From assembly GCA_003427395.1 (NCBI GenBank), contig BFEA01000029.1, forward strand, positions 3,692,366 to 3,756,365: a DNA stretch of 64,000 nt, read 5' to 3'. Below are positions 2,511 through 50,689 of the stretch, piece after piece. Positions within the stretch are counted from its first letter, which is position 1. Each line of letters opens with the position of its first letter. Under the pieces are notes generated by a model. The model was given only the letters and a program-made list of their open reading frames with translations. It had not been told where the DNA came from and made no database searches. The position numbers and the translations under genes were made by a program. This stretch comes from Chara braunii (Eukaryota; Plantae; Charophyceae).

Positions 2511-5500
2511 ATGGCATCTTCAAGCGGGGCAGGCACTTCGAGGGGGAAGGAGGTGGCAGGTTCGGATGATGAAGCCACGCGCGTGAAGGAACCATTTCAG
2601 CCACAGCCTGAGGCAAGGCAGTTGCAGCTGCAGGCAACGAAGGTGGCATTCAGGTGGGTGACGCAGGGGCAAATGATCCCGTCACTGGCGAAGGGGCAGT
2701 ACAAAGTGAAGTGCAATCTGTGCGGCGCAGATTGGGTCGCGTCGTACATGCGTGTGTGGCCCCATTTCACTCAGAAAACTAATCCACGCCCCTCGCATTA
2801 TCCGGAGTTGCTTCACATCCTTGCTGCGAAGGGGCATGCGATTGAGTGCAAGAAGAAGTTGCGGTTCATCCAATTGTATCGGATGGAGCAAAACAGCCCC
2901 CTGGACGGTTTGGTTCCCGCAATTCCGGAGGTGGAGGCACAAGGGAACATAGTGGATGCGTTCATAATGTCACCGACAGCACGGCATAGCAGAACGGTAT
3001 CGACTGTGGAAGTTGATGAAGAGGCAAGAGAGGGGGTTGTGGAAGAAGGTGGTGGAATGCTGAGGACGTATGCGCAAGGATCCGTTGCGGGCAAGAAATG
3101 CGGGAACTTGACACAAACATCGATCAAAAAGTGGGCAACCAACGGTTCACAACAAAGACTGGATGTGGCATGGGGGATGCACCTTCAAGCAGGAGCTGCA
3201 CGCCTTGTACCTCGAGTTGGGGGAGAAAAGACAGCAGGTGAAGATGCCTTCCTTGGAGGTCATCTGAACTGTTGTGTTGGACATCATCTACAATAAGGTG
3301 CAGGAAGACATGCATCTGCTGAAAGCGAAGTGGGACAACACAGGTTGCACCCTCCTCACTGATGGGTGCATAGATCGAAGGTACAAACCTGTGATGAACT
3401 TCATCGGGGCCCGCGAGAGTGGTGCGATCCTCTTGAAGGTCGTGGATGTGTCCAACAAGAAGAAGACTGCAGTTGCTTTTGGCAATGATGTGGGAGCAGA
3501 TGATCAGGGACATTAGGGTGCATCGGGTTAATGCAATCTGCACAGACAATGCGGAAGTCAACAAGCAAGCTGCACGGATCCTGCGAAGGCGTACAGATCG
3601 TGACATATCAAGCATTCCATGGGTCCCGTGCGCAACTTACTGCTTGAACTTGTTGATGAAGGATATCTGCGAGCTCGACTGGGTGAAGGAAGTGGTGCAC
3701 CGTGATTTTGTCCATGGAGGTCCGGTTTGCTTCCGCATACATGATGATGAACCGGATTTAGGGAAGGAGGTGTGTGCTTGAGGGGATGATGGACGAGGGG
3801 TGGAGGCAGTTAAGATGGAGCACAAGGAAAGATTGAGACAAGACCTGACGTACCAGACTGTTACTGCGCCCGAATGGTGGGAGAGGCTGCGCACGATTTT
3901 GGATGTGTTGGAGCCGATATACGAGTTATTAAGGAAGATGAGCCGCAACGGCACAGCCCCCCCAAGCCTTTCACACTTCGATGAAGGGTTGGGCAAGGGT
4001 CTGAAGACACTTACGTAGTTGACCGATGACCAGCGGCGGGCAATCATGAAGGCCGTTAACCAGCGGCGGGCAATCATGAAGGCAGTTAACCAGCTCACGA
4101 AGATGATGAGGCAGCCTGTTCATGCAACGAACTTTCTTTTTGACCCAAGGAGGAGAGACAACAAGTGGTTGATGGACATGCACTCCCCGCTGGTCCAAAA
4201 CACCCTCAAGTTTTTCTTATCACAGTGCAAAGAGAACGTCGCTTGGGGATGCAACGAGCAGCTAGATCTGTGGGCGGACTTGCAAGCTTTCCACAAGGAG
4301 CCAACTAAACATATGTCGGTAAATGATCCAGTGACAGGGAAAGTGGTGGAGGAGAGCTTGTGGACCGACTTCGCGAAGTTCGACAGCACCCTTGCTCAAA
4401 TGTCAGCCTCTGAATTGTGGAACCGCCATGGGGCCTCTCATAAGAAGTTGCAAGACATTGCCATGAGAGTGACAACGATGTGGAGCACTGCGACCCCTTG
4501 TGAGAGGAACTGGTCCTCTCTCGATCTTGTCCACGACAAGAGGAGGGGGCCGCTGTCGCCTGACAGCCTCGCCAAGTTAGTGTACATCCACTTGAATCTT
4601 CAGCTTTTGGACATCAAGAAGAAGAAAAGTATAGGAAGCTTGGCAGGGTACTTGGACATGTGGGCTGCATTCTTCAACGATGTGGAGGCACCAACGTCAA
4701 ATGATCCTGCGGTGTTCCAAGGGCTGCAACTCTAGCAGACTTGAGTAATGACGAAGTGGCCTGCCGGGCAAATCTAACGAAGACCCCCGGAACTAGAATC
4801 TTGAAGCCTCATGTCGTTGATGGATCAAGCTCATCGGATAGCAGTGATGATGGGGAGGACCTCATTTGGAGAGGCAAAGGCAAGAACAAAAAGGTTGTTG
4901 AAGTTGTTGATGGTGGCAAAGGCAAGACGCAAATGGATGTGGATGCGAGGAAGAGGATATTGAGGAGAGTGAGGAAGATGACGAGAACTTTACGTTGTGG
5001 TCGCCAAGGGCAAATGACATATCCAACGACGACAATGAATTGGATGACGACCTCACACGTAACGTGGAGCGGGGTTACCTTGATAGTGACCTGGAGTTCT
5101 TGCGGCCTCGGGGGATGGACTTCAACGCATGCGTCGAAGTGGACAAGGACTTCGATGATGATGCTGACAGGGCGAGGGCGCAGTCCCTTGCTCATCGTGA
5201 TCGCGCCCTCGTGGAGCAATGGATTCAAGAGGAAACAACAAAATGAAGTGTTGTCCCTCCTCCGAGGAGGATGAACTATACAACGGCGGGAATGGGCAGA
5301 TGTCTACCGGCGGAGGGGGTTCAGCAGCAATGACATATGGAAGGCATGCTATGGGAACAACAAGAGGAAGACGTTCAGCAGCAGCGGCAGCGAGAGGAAG
5401 GACTGCAGGAGCAACAACAAGAGGAAGGCCTGCAACAGCAGATTCAAGGGCGAGTGGATGTGCTTCAGCAACAAAACCACCAGCCACAACACGATGGACT

Positions 5501-22789: not shown

Positions 22790-23396
22790 TGTCGGCGCGA
22801 ATACCCTTACAAGGGTATCCGCCCTGGTTTTTGCAAGTGACAGAAAGGCTCGGTTAACCTGGATTTGAAGTGCCCGCGCGGGGAAATGCGAGGGTCGTTC
22901 GCACGCGGGCAGAGGCCTGCCTTGCCCCGGTAGGGAGTACGTGGGTGCGCAATTTGTAAGGCGCGCGTGTGATTCTTCTGATTGAGTGAGCGGTCGGGGT
23001 AGGTGACCGACCCGGACCATGTTATGGCCTTGGTTAGGGAATGAAAGTTTGTTCTTGATCGGTGTGCGCGGCCCAGCGGTAGGATTGGCGCGCCGATAGG
23101 CGTATGGGATGGCCCGAGCACAGGCTGGTAGGCCGGCGCGGACGCTTAGGGGCCGTGAATGTAGATGGGGGCCGGAATAGTGGCCCGAGGCGGTATCTTG
23201 GCCCGAAACCGCCACGCGATACCACTGTACATGGGAAGCTGCGCCTGCTGGTTACAGGCTTGGGCTTAGCCCTATTGGTTACGGCGTTGGACTATTGCGG
23301 CGAAGGTACGGAGATCGAGGCTAGCGGACTACGGTGCGGGAGCGGCGAAAGGATTGAGGGGTTGATGGGCCCGTGGGACTATCCCCCTCGCCTTTT
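22790..23396 (-). repeat. LTR-like terminus (22790-23381) preceded on the minus strand by a polypurine tract (23382-23396)
   Basis: Minus strand: AAAAGGCGAGGGGGA, then TAGTCCC..., ending ...GGATACCCTTGTAAGGGTATTCGCGCCGACA. The terminal ~100 bp is homologous to 44760-44857, and the terminal ~45 bp to 55682-55727. Confidence 0.5.
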
Positions 23397-23499
23397 ACAG
23401 TTGTGGCAGCCGCGATTCCCGCCCGATTGCCGCATGTTGCGGGGTTATAAATATGTTTATCTATGTATAATTTATTTATTTCGGATTTTGTTACTGTTA

Positions 23500-26300
23500 T
23501 TTCTCACGCCCGTATGTGGGCGCGAAACCGTGGTAGGTACATCCGCGAACTACCGAAACGTGGATCGGCGCCTGGACCCAGATGATGGAACTTGGTGGGT
23601 AAAGCCACATACTCCGAATCGCCTTGGGTCGGGTGCCTCCGCGGCCCAGGCTGTGTCCTTCGGGGCACCCTATAGAACTGGGGCGGTGAAGGACGACGGT
23701 AGTACTGGCAGGTTAAGTCGTCATTTCGGCGAGCATGGCGTTTTTTGCTGGAATGGAGCTCGTCGAAGATGCGCCTGTTTGGACCCGGCCTCGAAGGGGG
23801 GCCAGGTTCGTCCTGACACGGCGAAGGTCGGGGCGATGCGGAAGTTTTTCGTAAGGCCTGCATAGGGGTGGCATGTATAAGCAGAGGAAAAAGGAGGGCC
23901 CCGGAGGCCTGCTGGCGTTAAAAAGTCCGAAATCGCCTGAACCGGTTACGAACGAGAGCCAAGTCCACGCGAGATAGAGCGTCGTGGGGCGCTGCCTCGG
24001 ACAGGTCGGCCGGAATGACCCGGCACAGGGAAGACCCGTGTGGCTGCTATATACGAATGGCACGCATAAACCGAGGGAGGGGGTGAGTACGGCTACTGCG
24101 TGAGGAAGGTATGCGTGAGTCCGGGAGTGAACCCGGACAGGAAAATGGGCTGGGGGCGTGCAAAAGGGCTGCGTGGCCCTTGGGGCGACCGCGGGGCATT
24201 ACCGCGGCAGAAGTCCTCCAGGTCATCCGCAAAGGCTGAGAGGGTACGGGGATATTCGTAAGCCCGCGGCATGAGGATCGCGTGCGAAGATCAGGGACGA
24301 ACCCGGACGCGAATCAGGCCGGAGGCGGGCGACGGGTGAAAAGGTTCAGCGGCTTTGGAAGTGTTGCAGGGGACGGTTTTAATCCAGTCCTTTGGGGCAT
24401 CCGTTAAAAAATTGGAATGACACGGAGGCGATCAGCATGGCCTCTGCGTGAGGGTGGTATGCATATATAGTGTGAGGGTCCGACAGCCAAGCGTTTCTTT
24501 CGCTCTTTGGTGTCCGGTTGCTATCGGACCGTGTGGCGTTGGAAAGGCGGGATGACGTCAACGGGGGCTGGAAAACGGAGATGGCGGGTAGACAGGTGGA
24601 GTGCCGCGGGAGAGAGACGGCGCGCTCGTTCCTTGATGGTTTTAGGCCGGGGGAAAGGCTGCATGGGGTTTTTCGGGCGAGGTGACCTCGATTATGAGGT
24701 CAGTTTTAGAGGAAGGTAGGCGAGAAGGGAGGCGGAAGAGAAACGGGCTGTGCGAAAGCGACGGAAAAATAGTATGGCGGGAGGGTGAACCGGTAACTTG
24801 CTCACACTTCATCAGAATCGGGTAAGGGAAAGTGTTAACTGGGGGTTTCGGATGCGGGCGAGCTATTTGGCACAGTTGGTCCGAGGAGCGGATTAGCAGG
24901 GCAGGAGTTGGAGTGAAGGGGTAATGTGCGGAGCCAGGGCGGAAGCGGTAGTGAAGGGGGCAAGGGCTAGCTAGTTCGGACGTCCCCTACCTGTCCTCGG
25001 TGAAAATACAAGGCGGATTGAAGGCTCCTTGCTACGACGAAGTGAGCGATGACGTTACGGAAAGAGGGATTGAGGATGCGTTGGGGAGGAAGGGTCTCGG
25101 GATGTTAATGCACTTGATCGGGATCTTACGAAAGAGTCATTCCGATTTTGCTCGGTCATTCGGATAGGAGCAGCGGGAGGAAGGGGCTCACCTACCTGCC
25201 ACGTGTTCAACTCAATGATTCTCGTCGCCATGGGCCCACCTGCGTCCGTCACCATGGGTCTGATTGGCTTGTGGCGGCCACCTCTCTGAGTCTCTGTGTA
25301 TGACCAATTGGACTCGATTGGGCTGCATGGGAGGCCGTTTTTCCGTCCGCAACGACCCTGTAGCCGTAGTCAGTACTCAGGTGGCGGCTTACCTGCCCAC
25401 ATGAGACTCGAGTTGTTTGACCCGCTCTGGGGGCCGGGTAGGATACGTATCCGGCTTGACTGGAGGTCTGTGTACCTCTGCTGAGAACTTCTTAGGCGGC
25501 AGTTACAGGAACCCCCCGTTGCTGCAGTCGGAACCCATGGTTGGCACCGAGTCGCCGTATGTTTGGAGTCTGGGCACTGCGCATGGCTGAAGGGAGAAGC
25601 TACCGTTGCCCTGAGTATGTTACTGCAATGTGGGTTGTGGCTTGACTGCAATGGGCACGGTACCTTATCGAGTTCTACCGGGCTTGTTGCCAGGTGCCTG
25701 TACGCGTTGGGTTGGCTACGAAGTGGGGACCAGACTAATGATAGGTTGATTGGCGGGGCAACAGCGAGCAGCCCATGGGTTTGTGTGACATGTTTGATGC
25801 CTAGTGTACTGTTCATTGGTAGGGGAAAAGAAAGAGGTGGACTGCTAAGCTGCAACATTTTGGCCGCTCCTGCTGTAGGCGCTGCGGGTTGATTCGGCTG
25901 TTGTGCTACAACAGCGGTTGCTGAACCTGCTGCAGGCAACTACGCTGCATTGGGTACGACTATTTAGGACTGTGTGACTGCAGTCTCATTAGGGGAAGCG
26001 AAGATGTAGTATGGGAGAGGTGGTTGGGTCGTAAGAGGGGTTGTTGTTGCAGCTTGGCGGAGCGGCTGCGAGGGGGGCTATTGCTGCGAACTGGGACTTC
26101 GTCAGGGGACTTTGCAGCTGTTTGACCCGGACTTGATCAAGCTGCAGCTGTTTTTGGTCGCCATTACAGGATCTTCGGGCATTGAGGGCTAGAAGGCCCT
26201 CTCACGCAAGTCTGAGCGCTCCATTCCGAAAAATGAGGGTCTTGGACTTTCTTCTTCTGTCCCTCTTCCTCTGAGTCTGTTCCTTTGGTTCTGAGAGAAA
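23500..26300 (-). pseudogene. Fragmented Pro/Ser/Ala-rich ORF of unknown function inside the retroelement-like block
   Basis: Collinear minus-strand ORF pieces at 25370-25939, 25055-25255, 24379-24561 and 23504-24063. No recognised domain. Confidence 0.3.
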
Positions 26301-26683
26301 GGCGGCAGGCGGGCGTGTGGTCCGTAACCCGCGCCAAGGCCTTGTGCGAGGTTGCCCCACCGATTGCGGGAGCTCTACCGGGATTCAGGCGGAGTCTTGG
26401 AGGCAGGAAACTGGGTGGTAATCCTTTGAATCCCTCTATAAACCCAACTATAACCCATATTTGTACATCTCTCTATGTTTGACTGAGTGTATTGTGTGAA
26501 TCCCGTATGCGGTTTTGAGTTTGACTTTCGGGACATAAGTCAGATTGAAGTAAAAGAATGTATGGGCAAATCTCAGTTTCAGATTGTTGATTGTCTGAAA
26601 GCAGATTGTGAATGAAATGGGTTGCATCTGGGGGAAGGTTGGGAGAAAGGTAGTATTGTATGCAGTCTGGTTGGGTCATTGAG

Positions 26684-27620
26684 GCTGGGAGGTCCCCATA
26701 AGTTTGGGGAAGCCCAGCACTTTGTTTATTTTTGGATTGCATGGAGCCTCAGGCCGCTCTATAAGTTTAGGTAGCCTAAAGCTCTGGAGGCTGTGATGTC
26801 CCCATAAGTTTGGGGAGGCCTGGTGCTGTGAATTGCATGGAGGGTCAGGAAGCTCTATAAGTTTAGGTGTCTTGACTGCTCTGACATGGGAGGGTTGATT
26901 GTGCCTGATTTTCAGGGGCTCAGGGCGCTCTATAAGTTTAGGTGCCCTGGGTCGCCTTGTTTATTAGGGGATTCTTTATGTTTCTTTGTTTCTGAACAAG
27001 GAGGTCTGAACCGCTCTATAAGTTTAGATGGTTCAGCCCTTCTCCTGTTTTGTTCTGAGGGAATAACTCTGGCAGGAGGCAGGCCGCTCTATAAGTTTAG
27101 GTAGCCTGTCCCACTGCCTCGCACAGACTGGATCAGAGAGAAGCGAACCTGGCAGAGGGTCACACCGCTCTATAAGCTTAGGTAGTCTGACCCAATGCCT
27201 CACACATGTTGGAACTTAATGGATATAATCTGGCTATATTGTATTACTATGCTATTAAGAACAGGCTAGTCAGACCGCTCTATAAGTTTAGGTAGCCTGA
27301 CTATAGCTTATCACAACTGAAGAGGGTATAACTAAGAGGTATAGCTCAAGGTAAACTTGGGCGGGTTGAGCAGTGTTCTAAGTTGAGCGGCTCAGCCTTA
27401 TGTCCCCTTTAAAGATTAAGTTCAGAGAGGTTTATATAATTTGGTTATTTAAACAGTTTAGGGCGACTAGAGTGGTCTAGTTATACGCCCAAAGAAGAGA
27501 GAAGTAGTTGTGCCCTTTGTTTGTGTCTACCTGGCCAAGTCAGAACGCTCTATAAGTTTAGGTGTTCTGACTGTGGGTCTGGCTAAGTTGGGCGCGCTCT
27601 GTAAGTTAAGATGCCCTGAC
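26684..27620 (+). repeat. Array of ~12 stem-loops with a conserved TAAGTT loop and covarying stems
   Basis: Core GCTCTATAAGTTTAGGT (or CCCCATAAGTTTGGGG) flanked by copy-specific inverted repeats, e.g. AGTCAGAAC/GTTCTGACT, CTGAACC/GGTTCAG, CAGGGC/GCCCTG, GCTGGG/CCCAGC. Confidence 0.85.
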
Positions 27621-27899
27621 CTATGCCTTATGTAAGTTGGGTATAAAGGGGTAACTCACAAAGGAAGCACGAACTATTGCTTGCTAAAGGAGCTTGGGAT
27701 TGGTGAGAGTATTTACCCTTGTAGTTTGGCCTGCATGTGGCTGAGTGAGACTATTACTTGGCCTAAGTTTTAGGTTGACAGGTAGTTGCTTTAGAGGCTC
27801 GCCACGTGCTAGAGCGATAGGAGTTAGGTCAATTCTTGCATTTTTTGAGTTGACATTATTTTACTTAGATCGATTCTTGCATTTTCTGAGGCTTGCTAT

Positions 27900-28490
27900 T
27901 ATACTTGGACTTGTATAAATTTTGGTAAGCTACTTTCTCTACGGGAATCGCTGGCGAAATTTCTACAGATTCAAGGAGTTAGATAAATTTTGACTTGTCA
28001 AAGTTTAACTTGTCTTTTCATTATATCTGACTTAGTAAAAATCTGAAAAACCTCATTTTATAAAGGGAATGCTGCCCAGTTTTTTGCTAATTTAGGGAGT
28101 TGGACAAAATTGGGCCTTGGGAAGTCAAAGTTAGTCTCAGGTTTCAAACTTAGCCTTGCATAAATTTTGGGAGAACACTTTTTTAGGGGAGTGCTGCCGA
28201 AATTCCTGCAAAGACTAAGGAGTTAGTCGGATTTTGTCTAAGTTGAACTCAAGGTTGGGGGTTGAGTTCAAATTCGACTTGGTATAAATCTGGGAAATCC
28301 TCAATTCCAAACGGGGTGCTGCCTAAATTTCTACTAATTCAGAGAGTTAGACAAAATTTGACTTTCGAGAGTCGTAGACTACTCCTGCTTTTGATATTTG
28401 AGCTTGTATAAATTCTGAAAAGGCACTTTTCCTACGGGAAGCGCTGCCAAATTTTTTTTAAATTAGAGGAGTTAGACTTTATTTTGTCAG
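27900..28490. repeat. Diverged ~123-bp tandem repeat, 5 copies
   Basis: Recurring CTTGTATAAAT...GGGAA(T/G)GCTGCC..AATTT...GGAGTTAGAC blocks starting near 27910, 28030, 28155, 28278 and 28403. Confidence 0.75.
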
Positions 28491-31379
28491 GTGGCGATTT
28501 TTGCGATCCACCCTGAGTAGGGGAGATTCAGTCATTAGTCTACCTTTGCTTGGGCACTGGCTTAGAGGCAGGCTTGAACTTAGCTGGTAGGTGGCTTTGA
28601 GTAAAAATGTGTTATTGAGGTTTATCCCCCATATGCTGATGATTTAGCTTGGGCATTTGACCTATCTTGTGTTACAGGTCCTTTGGGACGTCTAATTCAA
28701 GATCGGGACTAGACTCAGCTTGATCCCTTGAGGATCACCTTCTGTTATCACTGATAACATGTCGGTTGCCGATTCGTCGGTTTACGACTCGATTTCAACC
28801 CACTCTCCATACTCAACCTAAAAGGCTTTAGCCCTGGTGATTTTACTGTTTGTTAAGGGTTTTACCCGGACTTTTATTGAATGGTCATTTAACAAAGGTA
28901 CTGAGTATTTAATTGCGGTTGGTCGGATCGGCGGTTGGGGCTTGCATGGCTAAAGCGAAGGGGTATGAGCATAGAGAATGATTGGGGTTGACTCCGTGTA
29001 GTGCGTGTTTGTCGCTTGATTCTTGGTGTGATTGCAGGTATGTCATGTAGCTCGGATTATGGATTTGGACTACTTGCCATCCCATATACATATACATGGT
29101 TGTGAGGAGTCTCACTATGCCTGTGAGAAGTGATCGTCGCATCTCTATTTTTCCTTGTGCATGTATGCGTAGGTATACCTAGGATAAGCGTTCGAGAGGC
29201 CTAAGAGGCCATGTTAAAACCCGTTTAAAGGTTGAGGTCGAAATGCGCAGGGGAGACCCTCCCTTCTGCCTATTTGCGTCTTGGGGCTTTCATAGTCGGA
29301 CGTTGGTCCTGGGCCAGGATTCAAGGCCCTTATCCAGGACATCCCAAACCCTAGACTCTGTAGGGAAGGGGTTTCCCCTCGTACAGAGCCTATTTACTTT
29401 GGCCGGCGAGACACCCCACCTTGAAGGCGGAGATGCCGCGAGGGCCGAACGGCCTGTCCTTCAACCGTTCAATATCACGAGGGGTGACCCATCGCGATGT
29501 GTTCCTTCAACCATTCAATATCGCGAGGCCGGGGCCGCGATTACCACGTATGATTGGCATCGATGGTTGGCATAGAATTGGTCTGTGGGCATGCTGCTTT
29601 ATGTTAGAATATCGCCGCGACGCTTCGTCGCCCCGGTGCCTAAAGGTTATGGGATCGTCAGGCTCGCACGTAGACGCAGCGCTTGGGATTATTGTAGGCC
29701 GCTGGTACCACCCATAGAGGGGAAGGGTGCTTTAAGGCTATGAGTTTTATTAAAGCCAGGGGACCTTTGCCCTATTCCCTCTTCTTGGGTTCGTGCGTGT
29801 CTTGTTTGCTTTTTAGAGATTTTTATGGTTGGACGTTGTAGTCTGTGGCAGCCGTCAAAGTCAAACCCCTTGACTTTCGTCCAGGCCCGGGGAGGACTTA
29901 CCCCTAGGGCCGCGAGAGACGACTACCACCACAGGTTCTGGACCTGTGTACCACCCGCTCTGCACAAGGGTGCAGAAGAGGGTGTGTGGCATTCAACCGC
30001 GCATAGCGGTTGTCTGGCGTCGAGAGATTAGCCCTCAAGGCGCGTGTCAGCCGACACTTGAGTGTCGAACGTGACCCTCGAGATTAACGAGGGTTGCGCG
30101 AGTATGGGTACTACATAGTACGCCATCACTGCGACTGCTTGTGTACACTCGCATTGCGAGTCGATATGAGCTAGCCCTGCGTCCGCGCGGTTTTGTACTA
30201 AGTCTCGCGCAAGATGCCTATCCGACTTCCGCTTCGGAAAGTTATGGGTTGGCTACCGAGGGGCTAGGAGCGTTGTCGCGTTGTTTGTGTTGCGTCGCGT
30301 CGTAAGCACGTGTGTGCGTGTGTCTTATTTTCGTGTTCGTAGAGTGGTATGCGCGTGGTGTGTGGGATGCGTCCTAGTCGACCGACGTCGGGCCGCGCTT
30401 GGGACATCAGCCCCCCAAGATGTCGGGTCGCGTGCGGGTCCGACAGGCGTATTATCGCGCGTACCCCCTATGCTACAACGAACGAGAAACGCCATCGGCT
30501 GGTCCACCTCTACGATTGCAACCGAGTAGCTTTCGTATTGTGGACTGGTAGCTCGGCGGGGATATGCCCACCGATGGGAGGTGATAGCTCTCGTAAGGTG
30601 GAGTTAAGTCGTGCCTCGCGTAGGCCCTATCCTGTCGTAGGGACGCGCGAGAGGTATGGCTGGCGCACTCGGCCGGAGCGGCCTAAGGAAGCTCCACTTG
30701 CGCGTTCGTGTCGAGGTTGGTCCATCTCCTGCGTGACGCGGCCGAGAGGGTCCCGCGCTGCCACAAGCGGTGCCGGACCAATGCGCACGACATCGTGCAG
30801 GGGTCTTTTCCATCCGCACGATTGATCCCAGCCTCGCGATCTTATCGATCGCACGGTCGAAACCGGTCACGCCCGATTGTCGCCGATCACCCCTACACGA
30901 TGACCAGCTCCAAAAGGAGTTAGCCTAGTGGTGCAAGTCAATTTCAATCCCTTAGTCTCCAGGGTGAGACTCTAACGCGATAACCTACTGGGCTAACTAC
31001 TTCTACAGATGGAAAAGGAATTGCTCTTCTCTAGGAAGAACTTACACCCTGCTACTCACCCAACATATGGCTTGGTAGGCCCTACTGGCTACGTCTAACT
31101 ACGGGACTGACCCTTCCTTCCTATATCGCGACCTCGCACTCGTCGCGATTGTCCTTACCAGCCGCATGCATAGGCTCTGAATCGCGCTACTTCACAGCCA
31201 CACGTTTTTATTTCAAATAGGATAGATTCAAATTTAATAAGTCGATGACCATGCGTCCTAGTGACCCCGCCAAAAACAGAATACAACTGGTCACACTGTC
31301 GGTCAATCACCATTATTGTCGGATGTTCCAGATGTTTGGAGTTAGGTTAAAAAAAGGTCCTTAGCCTATCAGTCATCGG

Positions 31380-33425
31380 TAGGTCTGATTAGACTTCTGG
31401 CAAGCACGTCAATCTCATAAAGTCAAAAACTTTTACAACCGTCGGATAACGTTTGACATTTAAAAATATCGGGCAGATACCCTCATAAGGGTTGTCGATC
31501 CAACATCGTGCAAAGAGGGATACAACAATATTTATCAACAAGCATCTATAGTTCTCGTTGATACAACTTGTTGACTCCTTGGGAAGATGGGTGTAACTCA
31601 CAACCAATATTGAAGGAACAATCTGTTTTTTTGCATTTGTTTATGCTCTGAGTCTGATAGAGTACAGAGATAAAATGCAATTTTTTTACACCCTCCCCTT
31701 CGTTCTTCTTGGAGAGAAGGTTAACTGACCCCCCAATTTCCACCCCCATTTATAAGAAAACCAAACGGTCATTTTAACCATACTTCACACCAATCTGTAG
31801 AGTGCACTCCTTACTAACTTATTGTAAAACGAAAACCGAAAAAAAACAATTCAAAACATATAAAACAGCAAGCCAAAAGTGCACTTTCATGAAATTTCAA
31901 CAACATTTTAATTTGTCGATTCTTACAATTTTCACCACTACCCAAAACAACCATCTCCAGGAACCCAACAAACATCAAACTTCACAGAACCTAGTCCTCG
32001 TGGGGGACTGAAACACAATTGTAAAACCAACCTTAAACTCCTCCTCAAGGGACCCTTTGAAATCGGACTTCAAGGTCATGACCAGGTTCACAGAAGAAAT
32101 GAACCTTGTGGAGCCATTGAAAACAATCTATCTGGATGGTAAAAATTTATTGTGGGTCTCCTCATCCGCCAGATCAAATGACTCTCAAGTCATACAAAGC
32201 TTAGGGTGGAGTACTTCCTGATGAGAGGCCGACCAGTCGAGTGAATAATGAAGATCTCTATGCCCATTTACCCTTTATCTAATCATAGACTAGTGTTAGC
32301 TACTCTTGTTCCAGACAGTAAAATCAAGAGACAAAGATGCTACTATAAGCTCAACACTACGGTGTTAAGGGATAAATGGCTAGTGAAATCGATTCAGGAA
32401 TTTTTGAACCAATGGAAAAACTTCAAAGCTTACTTTGAATACGAAGGTCAGTGATTGGACGCAGGTAAATTGGCTTAGCAACTGCATCCCTTAGTTTTGT
32501 CTTACGGATTAAAGCCTTCAATCCAAAAATGGATCAAAAAAATTTCAAAAAACACCGAGTGGACTAAAAATGTAATAGGCGAAGACCCAAAATGTGATGA
32601 TTGTTGGGGGGGATAAAAAAAAAATGTTTGGAAGGACAAATTGGAAACAAAACAATTTAAAAAAGAAAAGATATGTGCAAAGATGGTCAAAATTATATGA
32701 GTTAAAGTGAGAGAGAGACTCGCTAAGGAAAACTTCAAGATACTCTCTTCTAATTGAGTTTTCCTTCATCATTAAGTTTTTATTGGTTGCTTTATCACCC
32801 CTTTTACCCATTCGGTTCAAAACATTTTGATATCCACCCGACCCACTATTTTGTCCCAAGAGGAATTGGGGCTACAAGAGAAACTCTTCCAACATTTCAG
32901 AGCCAGAATCTCAGTTGTTCGCAGGTTGGACCTAAATCGGCTGGTCTCAAATAAACGAGCCGGAGGTCGCTACTAGGAGCATGCCGAAGGCAAGTGCCCC
33001 GACTACAATGGACTTCTGGTCGAGTACTACCTACAATTTTGGATCTCCCTCGGACTCAAAGTGAAATCTCTATGTAATGGCCTATTAGAAGGAAAATAGT
33101 TATGGGAGACCAGTTGAACGTGAATTATTTCTCTACTATATAAAAATGAGATAAAATGAATGTGAGAAACTAAAGGCATATTTCACTTTGAATACATCGT
33201 ATAAATTACTGAGAAATAAGTCGGCTATAAGGCTATAAAGGTGCCTACCATAGTTGATTGGAATAAAGCAAGCTTTGTAAACTTGAAGGTCTGGAACATC
33301 GTTCACAATGTTCTCACAACAATAGAAGCACTAGAGGTAATTAAAGAATATAAATTTGAATATGTATCCCTACTCTGAGATATAGAAACGACGTACGATA
33401 GGATCAATTGAGACTTTGTTCTCAC
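31380..33425 (+). pseudogene. Decayed non-LTR retrotransposon ORF2 (L1/Tx1-like): APE endonuclease plus N-terminal RT, 3'-truncated
   Basis: DSLGRWV, LVLVGD*N (GDFN), PLSNHRLV (SDH), YYKLNTTVL (WKLN), MPKASAPDYNGLLVEYYLQFW (KAPGPDG..EFY..FW), VRN*RHISL (WRPISL), HNVLTTIEALE..LL*DIETTYDRIN*DF (DLEKAYDRV.W). Confidence 0.85.
31710..31817 (+). repeat. Dispersed repeat inserted in the LINE; second copy at 58318-58424
   Basis: GGAGA(G/A)AAGGTTAA..GACCCCC..ATTT..CAC....ATTTA.AAGAAAA...GGTCAT...ACTTCACACCAATCT.TAGAGTGCACT.CTTACTAA is shared by both loci. Confidence 0.75.
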
Positions 33426-48880: not shown

Positions 48881-50689
48881 TTTTTTCGGTGATTCGGTTG
48901 TTGCTTTCGACGTCAATTGAGCCCAGGGTCATTTGGAAGCCTTTAAGATTATGCGTGTAGGTCATACGAGGCTTATACCCCACGTCTTCAACTTGGAGGC
49001 TTGTACCCCACGTCTTCAACTTGTTCGGCTAATCCCCAACTGTGTTAGTTTTATATTTTTTAGAGGATGTAGGGTTAAGTCATTGTGGAACAATAATAAG
49101 TTGATGTAATCCATCATCACAGTATCCGAGCACAACACACACAAATCTTCAATCCTCTGTGAACCCCTTTTATTATTTGTCAGTTGGTCTATTAAGTAAG
49201 GGAAGACTACACGGAGTAGATCCCCTTGTAGCCACATCCCCAAAGAAACATTCATATAGCGAGACAGTTACTCGGAACTTCTTTTTCTTGCTATGTCTTC
49301 CAGCGATAGTTAGTCAAACTCCAATCAAATATCTTTCATACAATCAGTCTCTCCATGGTTATTCTTTCTTTATACAAATATTTTTTTATTTTCCTTGTCT
49401 TAAGTTCAGTTCTGAAGAATTGTTGACTCAAATTATTAGATGCAAAGACAATTACCTGGAGGTTATAGATTAAAGGTTTATGGGTTAGGCAGAAGTGTGC
49501 GTACCTCGTTGTTCCCTGCCTCCAGAGTTCCGCCTGAACTCCGGCAGAGCTCTCGCAATCGCCCTGTCTTTTGTATATGTCTAAGCTGGATGAAAGAGGA
49601 TCTGAGGTCCCTCAAATTAAGACCTTTCCCTCATAGTCACTTGGTATTAACATTTTTTTTTTTGTGTGAGAGGTTTAGACATGAGAGAAGAGTCGAGGGC
49701 GGAGGAAGTAGGTTTCCATTGTGATTCATAATGACTCTCCTTTCCATTTCCAACCCCTTTCTTTCCCTATGTTGCCAGAAGTAATAATAATAATATACCA
49801 ATAAGAATGATAACAATAACAATAACAATAAATAAATAATAATAATAAGAGAATAATCATGATATAATAGCAGCAACAATAATAAATAACACCAAATAAT
49901 AAACGGACAGTGATAGGCTAATGACATTTTAATTTGGACATAAAAGTATCCACATGACTCGGGGCTCATAAATCTGGTCAGAAACACTATCCGATTTAGT
50001 CTTTCTTTGACATAGTTATGGTGCCCAACACTCCAACAGAACCTCATCCCTGATCGCGGTATCCTCAGTAGCTTGTCTGTGCATGCTCACAACACATTCT
50101 CATCCAACTAGGATCTATCCTAGATGCCTTATATACTTACACATACACACTCATCCTCGCACATATGTTTGTTGTTTGTGGTAGCTATGGCCACCCCCTT
50201 TCCTTACCCTGTACCGTAGTCGCGTGCCCAACCGGCATTGATCAGATCCGAGAGCCAGCCTTTCAAAGGCAATATGAAAATAGCACAACGGAAGGCTGCA
50301 ATGCAAAGATCTAACTCATCATGGTCGATGGCGGAACCAGACCGTATACATCATTGCTCAAAAAAAGGGAGAAGCGACGAAGGGCGATAAGGAGGATCAA
50401 CCACAACAGCCTGACGAGCCCGATCCTCAATGTATCTCCCAATGTCGCTGCTTATACCTTGTCAAGTAGTAGTGTCATTGAACTGAGCAACATTCCAACC
50501 TCACGAGTTTCAACGTTCATTCTCTCCCTCTCTCTCTCTCTTTCTATGTTTGTCTGTGGTTTGTCTGTTGTCTACCCTTTTCCTTTTGTGCCTGTTTCCG
50601 TGTGTGTCACAGTGCGCTGTGTGCCTGTGTGTGTCTGCGTGTGTCATAGTGTGCATCACATTGTCATAGCAATTGTGTGGTGTTCACTG

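Follow-up and report, generated by a model that had tools for sequence, protein, structure and literature searches.

Twelve two-tier hairpins, eleven of them with an identical six-nucleotide loop, lie in a 940-nt non-coding block (positions 26683-27622) of the 64,000 nt of Chara braunii DNA analysed here (the window). The stems differ from unit to unit while remaining paired, and comparison with a diverged second copy of the array gives good support, at the level of sequence, to selection for a single-strand hairpin with a specific loop. The interpretation that we favour, at a little short of an even chance, is that the array is a putative many-site protein docking platform on the RNA of the element that carries it, most likely serving Gag-mediated packaging.

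Organization of the hairpin array

The loop reads TAAGTT (UAAGUU as RNA) in eleven hairpins and TAAGCT in hairpin 8 only, with loop starts at 26699, 26762, 26805, 26858, 26933, 27019, 27092, 27173 (the TAAGCT loop), 27283, 27379, 27553 and 27602. This hexaloop is carried on an upper stem of 3-6 bp, followed by a one-nucleotide asymmetry on the 5' side, and below the 5' excess lies a lower stem of 4-9 bp whose sequence differs in every unit. Each unit folded alone in a 50-nt window gives the described hairpin, at -15 to -29 kcal/mol. The first-pass annotation had proposed about twelve TAAGTT-loop stem-loops at these positions; all twelve are present and fold as it described, with the upper-stem variants (TCTA/TAGG, CCCCA/TGGGG and GTTC/GAGC) and the lower stems that it listed.

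Three types of core can be distinguished. Type B (GCTCTA-TAAGTT-TAGGT) is common to nine units, type A (TCCCCA-TAAGTT-TGGGGA) is found in units 1 and 3, and type C (GTTC-TAAGTT-GAGC) is restricted to unit 10. The 17-nt core GCTCTATAAGTTTAGGT has nine matches in the array with up to three mismatches, against 0.12 expected over the whole window, and the type A core (CCCCA...TGGGG) occurs twice against 0.04 expected. Three more degenerate TAAGTT sites are present at 27584, 27633 and 27764. The coordinates of the hairpins and of the surrounding features are given in Table 1.

Table 1. Hairpins of the array and associated features of the window. L001 is the diverged copy described below; R1 is a hairpin model trained on 22 hairpins.
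Feature	Position	Strand	Description
Hairpin 1, type A	26683..26719	+	TCCCCA/TGGGGA upper stem, TAAGTT loop, GCTGGG/CCCAGC lower stem; 39.6 bits with model R1
Hairpin 2, type B	26746..26782	+	GCTCTA-TAAGTT-TAGGT core, short lower stem AGGC/GCCT; the L001 stem is longer and different (CAGATC/GGTCTG)
Hairpin 3, type A	26789..26825	+	Lower stem decayed in this copy
Hairpin 4, type B	26842..26878	+	Lower stem GGTCAGGA/TCTTGACT
Hairpin 5, type B	26917..26953	+	Lower stem CTCAGGGC/GCCCTGGG; the upper-stem pair T-A is A-T in L001
Hairpin 6, type B	27003..27039	+	Lower stem CTGAACC/GGTTCAG; family majority G at 27028
Hairpin 7, type B	27076..27112	+	Lower stem GGCAGGC/GCCTGTC
Hairpin 8, type B	27157..27193	+	Loop TAAGCT; one C.C mismatch in the lower stem
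Hairpin 9, type B	27267..27303	+	Lower stem TAGTCAGAC/GCCTGACTA, one A.C mismatch
Hairpin 10, type C	27363..27399	+	GTTC/GAGC upper stem, GGGTTGAGC/GCTCAGCCT lower stem; 24.9 bits with model R1
Hairpin 11, type B	27537..27573	+	Perfect lower stem AGTCAGAAC/GTTCTGACT
Hairpin 12	27586..27622	+	Decayed in this copy (TCTG...AAGA)
Left edge of high-copy repeat	26183..26219	+	Summed DNA word depth about 17 before the edge, about 9,000 and more after it; end of a single-copy contig at 26219
Candidate left terminus	26183-26191	+	TGAGGGCTA
Candidate right terminus	30029..30037	+	TAGCCCTCA; exact inverted complement of 26183-26191; no target-site duplication
Best-conserved stretch upstream of the array	26340..26445	+	About 90% alike in L001; TATAAA at 26437-26442
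Five tandem units of about 122 nt	27868..28490	+	Adjoin the array downstream, within the same high-copy block

Spacing between the loops is irregular, at 43-174 nt. Units 1-2 and units 3-4 are related by a duplication (75% alike by BLAST), and units 7 and 8 are 83% alike over 58 nt (BLAST), from which we conclude that the array is an old, diverged tandem duplication. The spacers had been described as largely unrelated, which in view of these duplicates is only partly true. Tandem Repeats Finder calls no array at the hairpin block because the spacers have diverged.

Conservation of the loop and covariation of the stems

A second copy of the array, referred to here as L001, was found by a gapped two-core DNA pattern scan of public metagenome contigs. 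It lies on contig BFBZ01008522.1, of which the minus strand at 1-1370 is colinear with window positions 26150-27506, with an identity of 75% by BLAST and 82% by alignment column. All ten of the hairpins covered by L001 are present in the same order and the spacers are recognisably the same, so the array predates the divergence of the two copies, which are 75-82% alike. Judging from these sequences, each unit keeps its own identity across copies and the array is not being homogenised.

The twelve hairpins of the window and the ten of L001 can be aligned without gaps as 22 hairpins with a two-tier structure of 15 pairs, giving 330 cells. Standard pairs account for 80.3% of these cells, against 63.1% when the 3' letters are shuffled, a level of pairing that none of 500 shuffles reaches; sliding the partner by 1-3 columns leaves pairing at only 26-48%. 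Double-sided changes are seen among the 22 hairpins in all 15 pairs, and the covariation score, which is based on two element copies of paralogous units and on a structure derived from the same sequences, is 0.584, compared with 0.273 for the shuffled and 0.08-0.18 for the slid arrangements. Among the loop-closing pairs, 16 are A-U, three are G-C and two are C-G; among the pairs next to them, 16 are U-A, five are C-G and one is A-U. Within the loop, positions 1-4 and 6 are invariant across the 22 hairpins and position 5 is variable. Model R1 matches only its own training hairpins in the window.

The comparison of corresponding units in the window and L001 shows the same relationship. Paired stem columns have diverged by 35% and flanks by 34%, whereas the loops differ by 5% (3 of 60 positions; Fisher p 4e-7 against the stems and 2e-5 against the flanks). 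There are 25 double changes between the two copies, of which 15 are standard pairs in both, whereas partner shuffles within units, 2000 in all, average 2.8 such pairs, with 9 as the highest count. In hairpin 6, the L001 lower stem is CTGAGTT/GACTTAG, and a G-C closing pair replaces A-T. Since the stems covary and the loop is far more constrained than its surroundings, the structure appears to have been selected and is not a product of simple satellite drift; this was the position of the first-pass annotation, and the shuffled control that it had suggested comes out in the same direction.

The array might alternatively have no function and represent a tandemly duplicated palindrome whose arms are kept complementary by mutation, through template switching in replication or reverse transcription. 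The array did arise by tandem duplication, template-switch mutations can make compensating changes in one step, and reverse transcription offers many chances for such switches. However, this does not explain why the loop diverges seven times less than the stems and flanks, why the asymmetric geometry and the G.U position are conserved in nearly all units, or why units retain their identity across copies, and the fifteen compensated pairs between the two copies would need many rare events. We regard an absence of function as quite improbable.

Strand and nature of the folded molecule

Imperfect pairing in the alignment consists of 57 G.T, 18 A.C and 47 other mismatched cells of the 330. The earlier statement that most imperfect pairs are G-U on the + strand therefore stands as a count, but as evidence for the strand this excess is weaker than it seems, because the + strand is G+T-rich. 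The pair at columns 15/31 is dominated by the G.T wobble, its commonest state (13 of 22 hairpins); with this pair excluded and shared states counted once, the G.T:A.C ratio is 34:18, which differs from 1:1 (p 0.04) and not from the composition prediction. Single changes between copies give 21 G.U against 11 A.C (p 0.11).

Hairpins of the + strand exceed their complements in stability, with means of -16.9 and -12.1 kcal/mol respectively (Wilcoxon p 0.0007). Folding of the whole array gives z = -8.5 for the + strand and z = -7.5 for the - strand. The energy advantage of the + strand over the whole array is 80 kcal/mol, while shuffles alone differ by 74 kcal/mol, and a strand call from energies was dropped since the gap is almost all composition. 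Taken together the sequences weakly favour the + strand, by about 2:1, a ratio that base composition alone would also give.

Alternatively, the functional form may be DNA, with the hairpins folding in a single-stranded intermediate of reverse transcription or extruding as cruciforms; they could then be, for example, pause, transfer or recombination sites or sites for a structure-specific protein. The complement folds nearly as far beyond shuffles as the + strand does, composition could account for the strand asymmetry, the three RNA runs show no clear transcript, and the regulatory regions of plant retrotransposon LTRs contain palindrome clusters (PMC4728375). Against this, G.T wobble cells are three times as frequent as A.C, and the wobble at columns 15/31 would read as A.C, a mismatch, on the complementary strand. 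We also know of no reverse-transcription step that requires a dozen identical loops, and consider action as DNA unlikely.

The repeat that carries the array

Data for the same organism, from one DNA run and three oligo-dT RNA runs, were mapped on 25001-30000. Summed DNA word depth is 14-20 up to 26002 and 38 in the bin 26003-26169, and then jumps to 9,000-180,000, beginning with the bin at 26170 and continuing to at least 30000, compared with about 17 in the unique flank; word depth is not copy number, and an excess of hundreds to thousands of times over the single-copy level is a rough reading. A total of 23,180 contig pieces were placed on 25001-30000, and one clean single-copy contig ends at 26219. 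The jump in depth shows that the array belongs to a very abundant repeat, the conserved part of which starts near 26183, and dispersal is evident from the depth together with the presence of the diverged copy L001 on an unrelated contig. The location of the array in a non-coding repeat block, as originally described, is borne out, and the neighbouring ORFs have no Pfam match. The host repeat is probably a retrotransposon terminal repeat of the stonewort alga.

The ends of the repeat can be placed tentatively at a TG...CA pair, 26183-26191 and 30029-30037, that matches exactly over 9 nt and with which the repeat would span 3,855 bp, although 102 of 2000 shuffles (5%) give an equal terminal match and the L001 homology continues weakly left of 26183. 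No target-site duplication flanks these candidate ends (GGCAT vs AGGCG), and no second copy of 26183-30037, as expected of paired LTRs, is present in the 64-kb window; a solo or truncated LTR is possible. Inspection by eye after 30037 and after 28489 revealed no tRNA-complementary primer-binding site, and a TGGCGA... stretch at 28492 was rejected for want of a tRNA 3'-end match by eye. The array had also been described as antisense to an adjacent PPT/LTR-like end and ORF remnants. This view is unsupported, because the DNA left of ~26183 is single-copy, so that no LTR lies there, and the pyrimidine run at 26240-26280 is inside the repeat and conserved in L001; the ORFs have no Pfam match.

A Pfam scan of 20 ORFs identified no domain in the ORFs neighbouring the repeat and no gag in the window, and the ORF translations to the left and right of the repeat appear non-coding. 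The sole Pfam match, 22 kb off, is a hAT dimerisation domain (PF05699, E 8e-6) in the ORF at 4019-4735 (+), which by its sequence is a remnant of a cut-and-paste transposon. We also note, by eye, a decayed non-LTR retrotransposon reverse-transcriptase remnant at 32900-33420 (+), with motifs like those of N-terminal LINE reverse transcriptases.

Upstream of the array, the TATAAA at 26437 is conserved in L001 and the stretch 26340..26445 may be a promoter module. A diverged second copy of its core (26340-26420) is found, isolated, 23 kb away at 49490-49565 on the - strand. The ~75-nt conserved core common to 26340-26420, L001 and 49490-49565 (-) contains CCACCGATTGCGGGAGCTCT, and in two RNA runs the 22 nt at its centre are matched by reads of a single orientation, the flanks of which derive from other copies. 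Among the 122-nt tandem units downstream, four of five contain a TATA-like G(T/C)ATAAAT and all five a conserved GGAGTTAGA block; a second structured array in these repeats is unconvincing, the consensus fold being only -5.7 kcal/mol.

Most family copies have G at 26794 and A at 26818 in hairpin 3, giving a lower stem CTGGG/CCCGG, and C at 27608 and G at 27611 in hairpin 12, giving TCTG/CAGG with a G-C closing pair. Together with position 27028, the family majority at these five sites repairs hairpins 3, 6 and 12, and the window copy is thus, on its sequence, old and partly decayed. Elsewhere in the repeat, about 93 nt at 29873-29967 are absent from several DNA contigs of this organism, so the window copy has an insertion or duplication there relative to other family members. 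To the left of the repeat, 22800-26180 is single-copy, non-coding, G-rich and CpG-rich (GC 52-57%, GC skew about +0.08 to +0.26). A stretch of similar composition, which cannot be aligned, occupies the same position in L001, and 22800-26180 may be a fast-evolving part of the same element.

Expression

RNA reads placed on the 5 kb number 99, 2,239 and 167 in the three oligo-dT runs. Almost none is 99% alike; most fit partially, in both orientations, and track DNA copy number. Over the array the reads are few and derive from other copies (mostly 88-95% alike). No transcript starts, ends or splice joints stand out on 25001-30000 in the three runs, nor do these runs reveal detectable expression of, or a dedicated transcript from, the window locus, and the RNA signal of the family may be background or DNA carry-over. 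Between 36 and 66 RNA reads per run, all oriented alike, match a 40-nt stretch at 29434-29475 but are unrelated to the window on either side of it; the stretch may be a short motif shared with a transcript expressed elsewhere.

The identity of the loop raises the question of whether it pairs with another RNA. In the 5' splice-site consensus, UAAGU occupies positions +2 to +6, and where the closing base is G the sequence becomes GUAAGU, which is complementary to the 5' end of U1 snRNA. On this reading the array could titrate or attract U1 snRNP, with suppression of premature polyadenylation or retention of the RNA as possible outcomes, or its loops could pair with a primer or cyclisation partner. 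The invariance of loop positions 1-4 and 6 accords with a U1 target, as does the G-C closing pair that gives GTAAGT in L001 units 6-8 and in the family-majority unit 12. Most units, however, have A and not G before the loop, position 5 of the loop (which would be +6) varies, and the next position is an invariant T that has no U1 partner. A closed 6-nt loop is moreover a poor U1 target, the RNA reads contain no splice joints, and a 5-nt match easily arises by chance. AACTTA, the complement of the loop, is not enriched in the element; loop-loop kissing or pairing with an AACTTA partner within it was rejected on this ground, and the same result counts against RNA pairing more generally. A role in pairing with another RNA seems to us highly improbable.

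Database and literature searches

Rfam has no match in the whole window at gathering score, and the comparison with Rfam proposed in the first-pass annotation leaves the array without an existing annotation there. A permissive Rfam search of 26000-30200 gave a mir-1993 match outside the array, at 27 bits vs a gathering score of 82, which was taken as chance.

It is conceivable that the array is a source of small RNAs or a trigger that silences the family, or a decoy for the silencing machinery. The family is very abundant and apparently silent, and there is an analogy with the palindromes of maize Sirevirus LTRs, which are the main siRNA hotspot (PMC4728375). Nonetheless, at about 13-16 bp and interrupted by a bulge, the stems of the array fall short of the length that Dicer-type processing requires, and an invariant loop on changing stems is the opposite of what a small-RNA guide needs. 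A miRNA or small-RNA precursor would have a stem of about 20 bp or more and belong to a known family; here the stems do not exceed about 16 bp, Rfam gives no miRNA match at gathering score, and the weak hit falls outside the array. This reading is, in our estimation, very improbable.

The metagenome pattern scan returned four loci, of which only L001 is homologous. The other three (L002-L004) are AT-rich, probably bacterial repeats, and are dismissed as chance pattern matches; AT-rich tandem repeats in two of them (L002 2650-3150 and L003 4060-4170) contain TCTATAAGTTTAG without hairpin arms and are unrelated. Five viral scan hits (L005-L009) were judged chance from one 17-mer match each, and a further viral scan and a scan of prokaryote genomes by DNA pattern gave no matches. 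A 72-aa ORF of the window and a 97-aa ORF of L001 that overlie the array have no relatives in the protein collection. The literature yielded no description of such arrays in Chara or in LTRs.

A putative docking platform

An invariant non-palindromic centre with freely changing complementary arms is the signature of a loop that is read in a folded single strand, and the array has what characterises multi-copy protein-binding hairpins, a shared loop motif on varying, still paired stems. Because the same loop recurs in each hairpin, we infer that the array acts as a many-site docking platform. The hairpins would form in a single-stranded + strand copy, most likely the RNA of the element, and every one of them would present the same loop to a loop-reading, multimerising protein, for which twelve identical loops suggest avidity. 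The likeliest partner would be the element's own Gag/nucleocapsid, a host RNA-binding protein being the alternative, and such binding would serve to package or transport the element's RNA selectively. Retroviral packaging signals sit in the 5' leader, and if the TATAAA at 26437 is a promoter, the array would fall in the 5' leader of the transcript.

That a natural array of a dozen invariant-hexaloop hairpins, read by a dedicated protein that is specific for the loop, either Gag or a host factor, constitutes an undescribed retroelement cis-element is a more tentative proposal, which we consider possible and somewhat doubtful. As to its novelty, we would class the array as a variant within two known groups, the cis-acting hairpins of reverse-transcribing elements and multi-copy loop-presenting hairpins. 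To our knowledge, structured cis-elements of retrotransposons are almost unknown outside yeast, flies and vertebrates, and the stonewort lineage is described as the closest to land plants. The comparative evidence for a functional fold is unusually clean, with a loop that changes about seven times less than the sequence around it and stems that are rewritten compensatingly, and the host repeat makes up a visible part of the genome. Should a protein read the loop, the array would reveal the way in which a huge family, non-autonomous or with gag only, labels its RNA for packaging, and RNA tagging could gain a new orthogonal pair of hairpin and protein. Should U1 snRNP or the silencing machinery be the partner, the structure of transposon RNA would be connected to the surveillance of RNA by the host.

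Comparison with known systems

One of the two closest parallels is provided by the packaging-signal stem-loops of single-stranded RNA viruses and HBV (MS2, parechovirus and enterovirus among them), in which many stem-loops with a common short loop motif and differing stems give avidity for a multimerising capsid protein (PMC6281560, PMC4751978, PMC5431903, PMC7612645). The array shares with these the same loop on differing stems of one strand. However, the viral signals, which SELEX or CLIP brought to light, are scattered through coding sequence and their motifs are degenerate, whereas the Chara array has twelve hairpins with a near-invariant hexaloop in one 940-nt non-coding mobile-repeat block, and protein binding to them is putative.

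Palindrome clusters capable of forming hairpins, several per LTR, are also known from the LTR regulatory region of maize Sireviruses (PMC4728375; PMC2829016), where they form the main siRNA hotspot and have been proposed to act as a silencing decoy (PMC4728375). In both cases a hairpin cluster is kept in a very abundant plant-lineage repeat while the surrounding sequence changes. In the Sirevirus palindromes, though, the arms are conserved and the central base varies (PMC4728375), a pattern that fits a double-stranded site, whereas the array has the reverse, an invariant centre and covarying arms, which points to a folded single strand; assignment to the Sirevirus type was rejected accordingly. 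A CRISPR array can be discounted also, given that the arms differ between units, the spacing is 43-174 nt, the spacers are conserved between copies, and the setting is a eukaryotic repeat-rich locus and not a prokaryote with cas genes.

The second close parallel is with iron-responsive elements, of which five in the transferrin receptor 3' UTR are read by one protein. They resemble the array in having a conserved hexaloop, a 5' bulge a few pairs below it, a variable paired lower stem and several copies. The loop of an IRE reads CAGUGN, and a bulged C lies five pairs beneath it; the array differs in its UAAGUU loop, in its geometry, in the lack of an Rfam IRE match and in belonging to a repeat family and not to a cellular mRNA.

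Among reverse-transcribing elements, the purine loop of MMTV is a packaging hairpin in the leader that is bound by Gag (PMC8096270). As in MMTV, the array offers a loop on a stable stem, for which reading by Gag and a leader position are putative here, but retroviruses have one or a few different hairpins and not a dozen sharing one loop. In this last respect the array resembles the engineered MS2/PP7 arrays, in which hairpins that all have one loop and a 5' bulge follow each other in tandem, with stems varied against recombination and irregular spacers. Those tagging arrays are synthetic and use phage-operator loops, whereas the Chara array is natural, and if our interpretation is correct it would be their natural counterpart and provide a new loop-protein recognition pair from a streptophyte alga.
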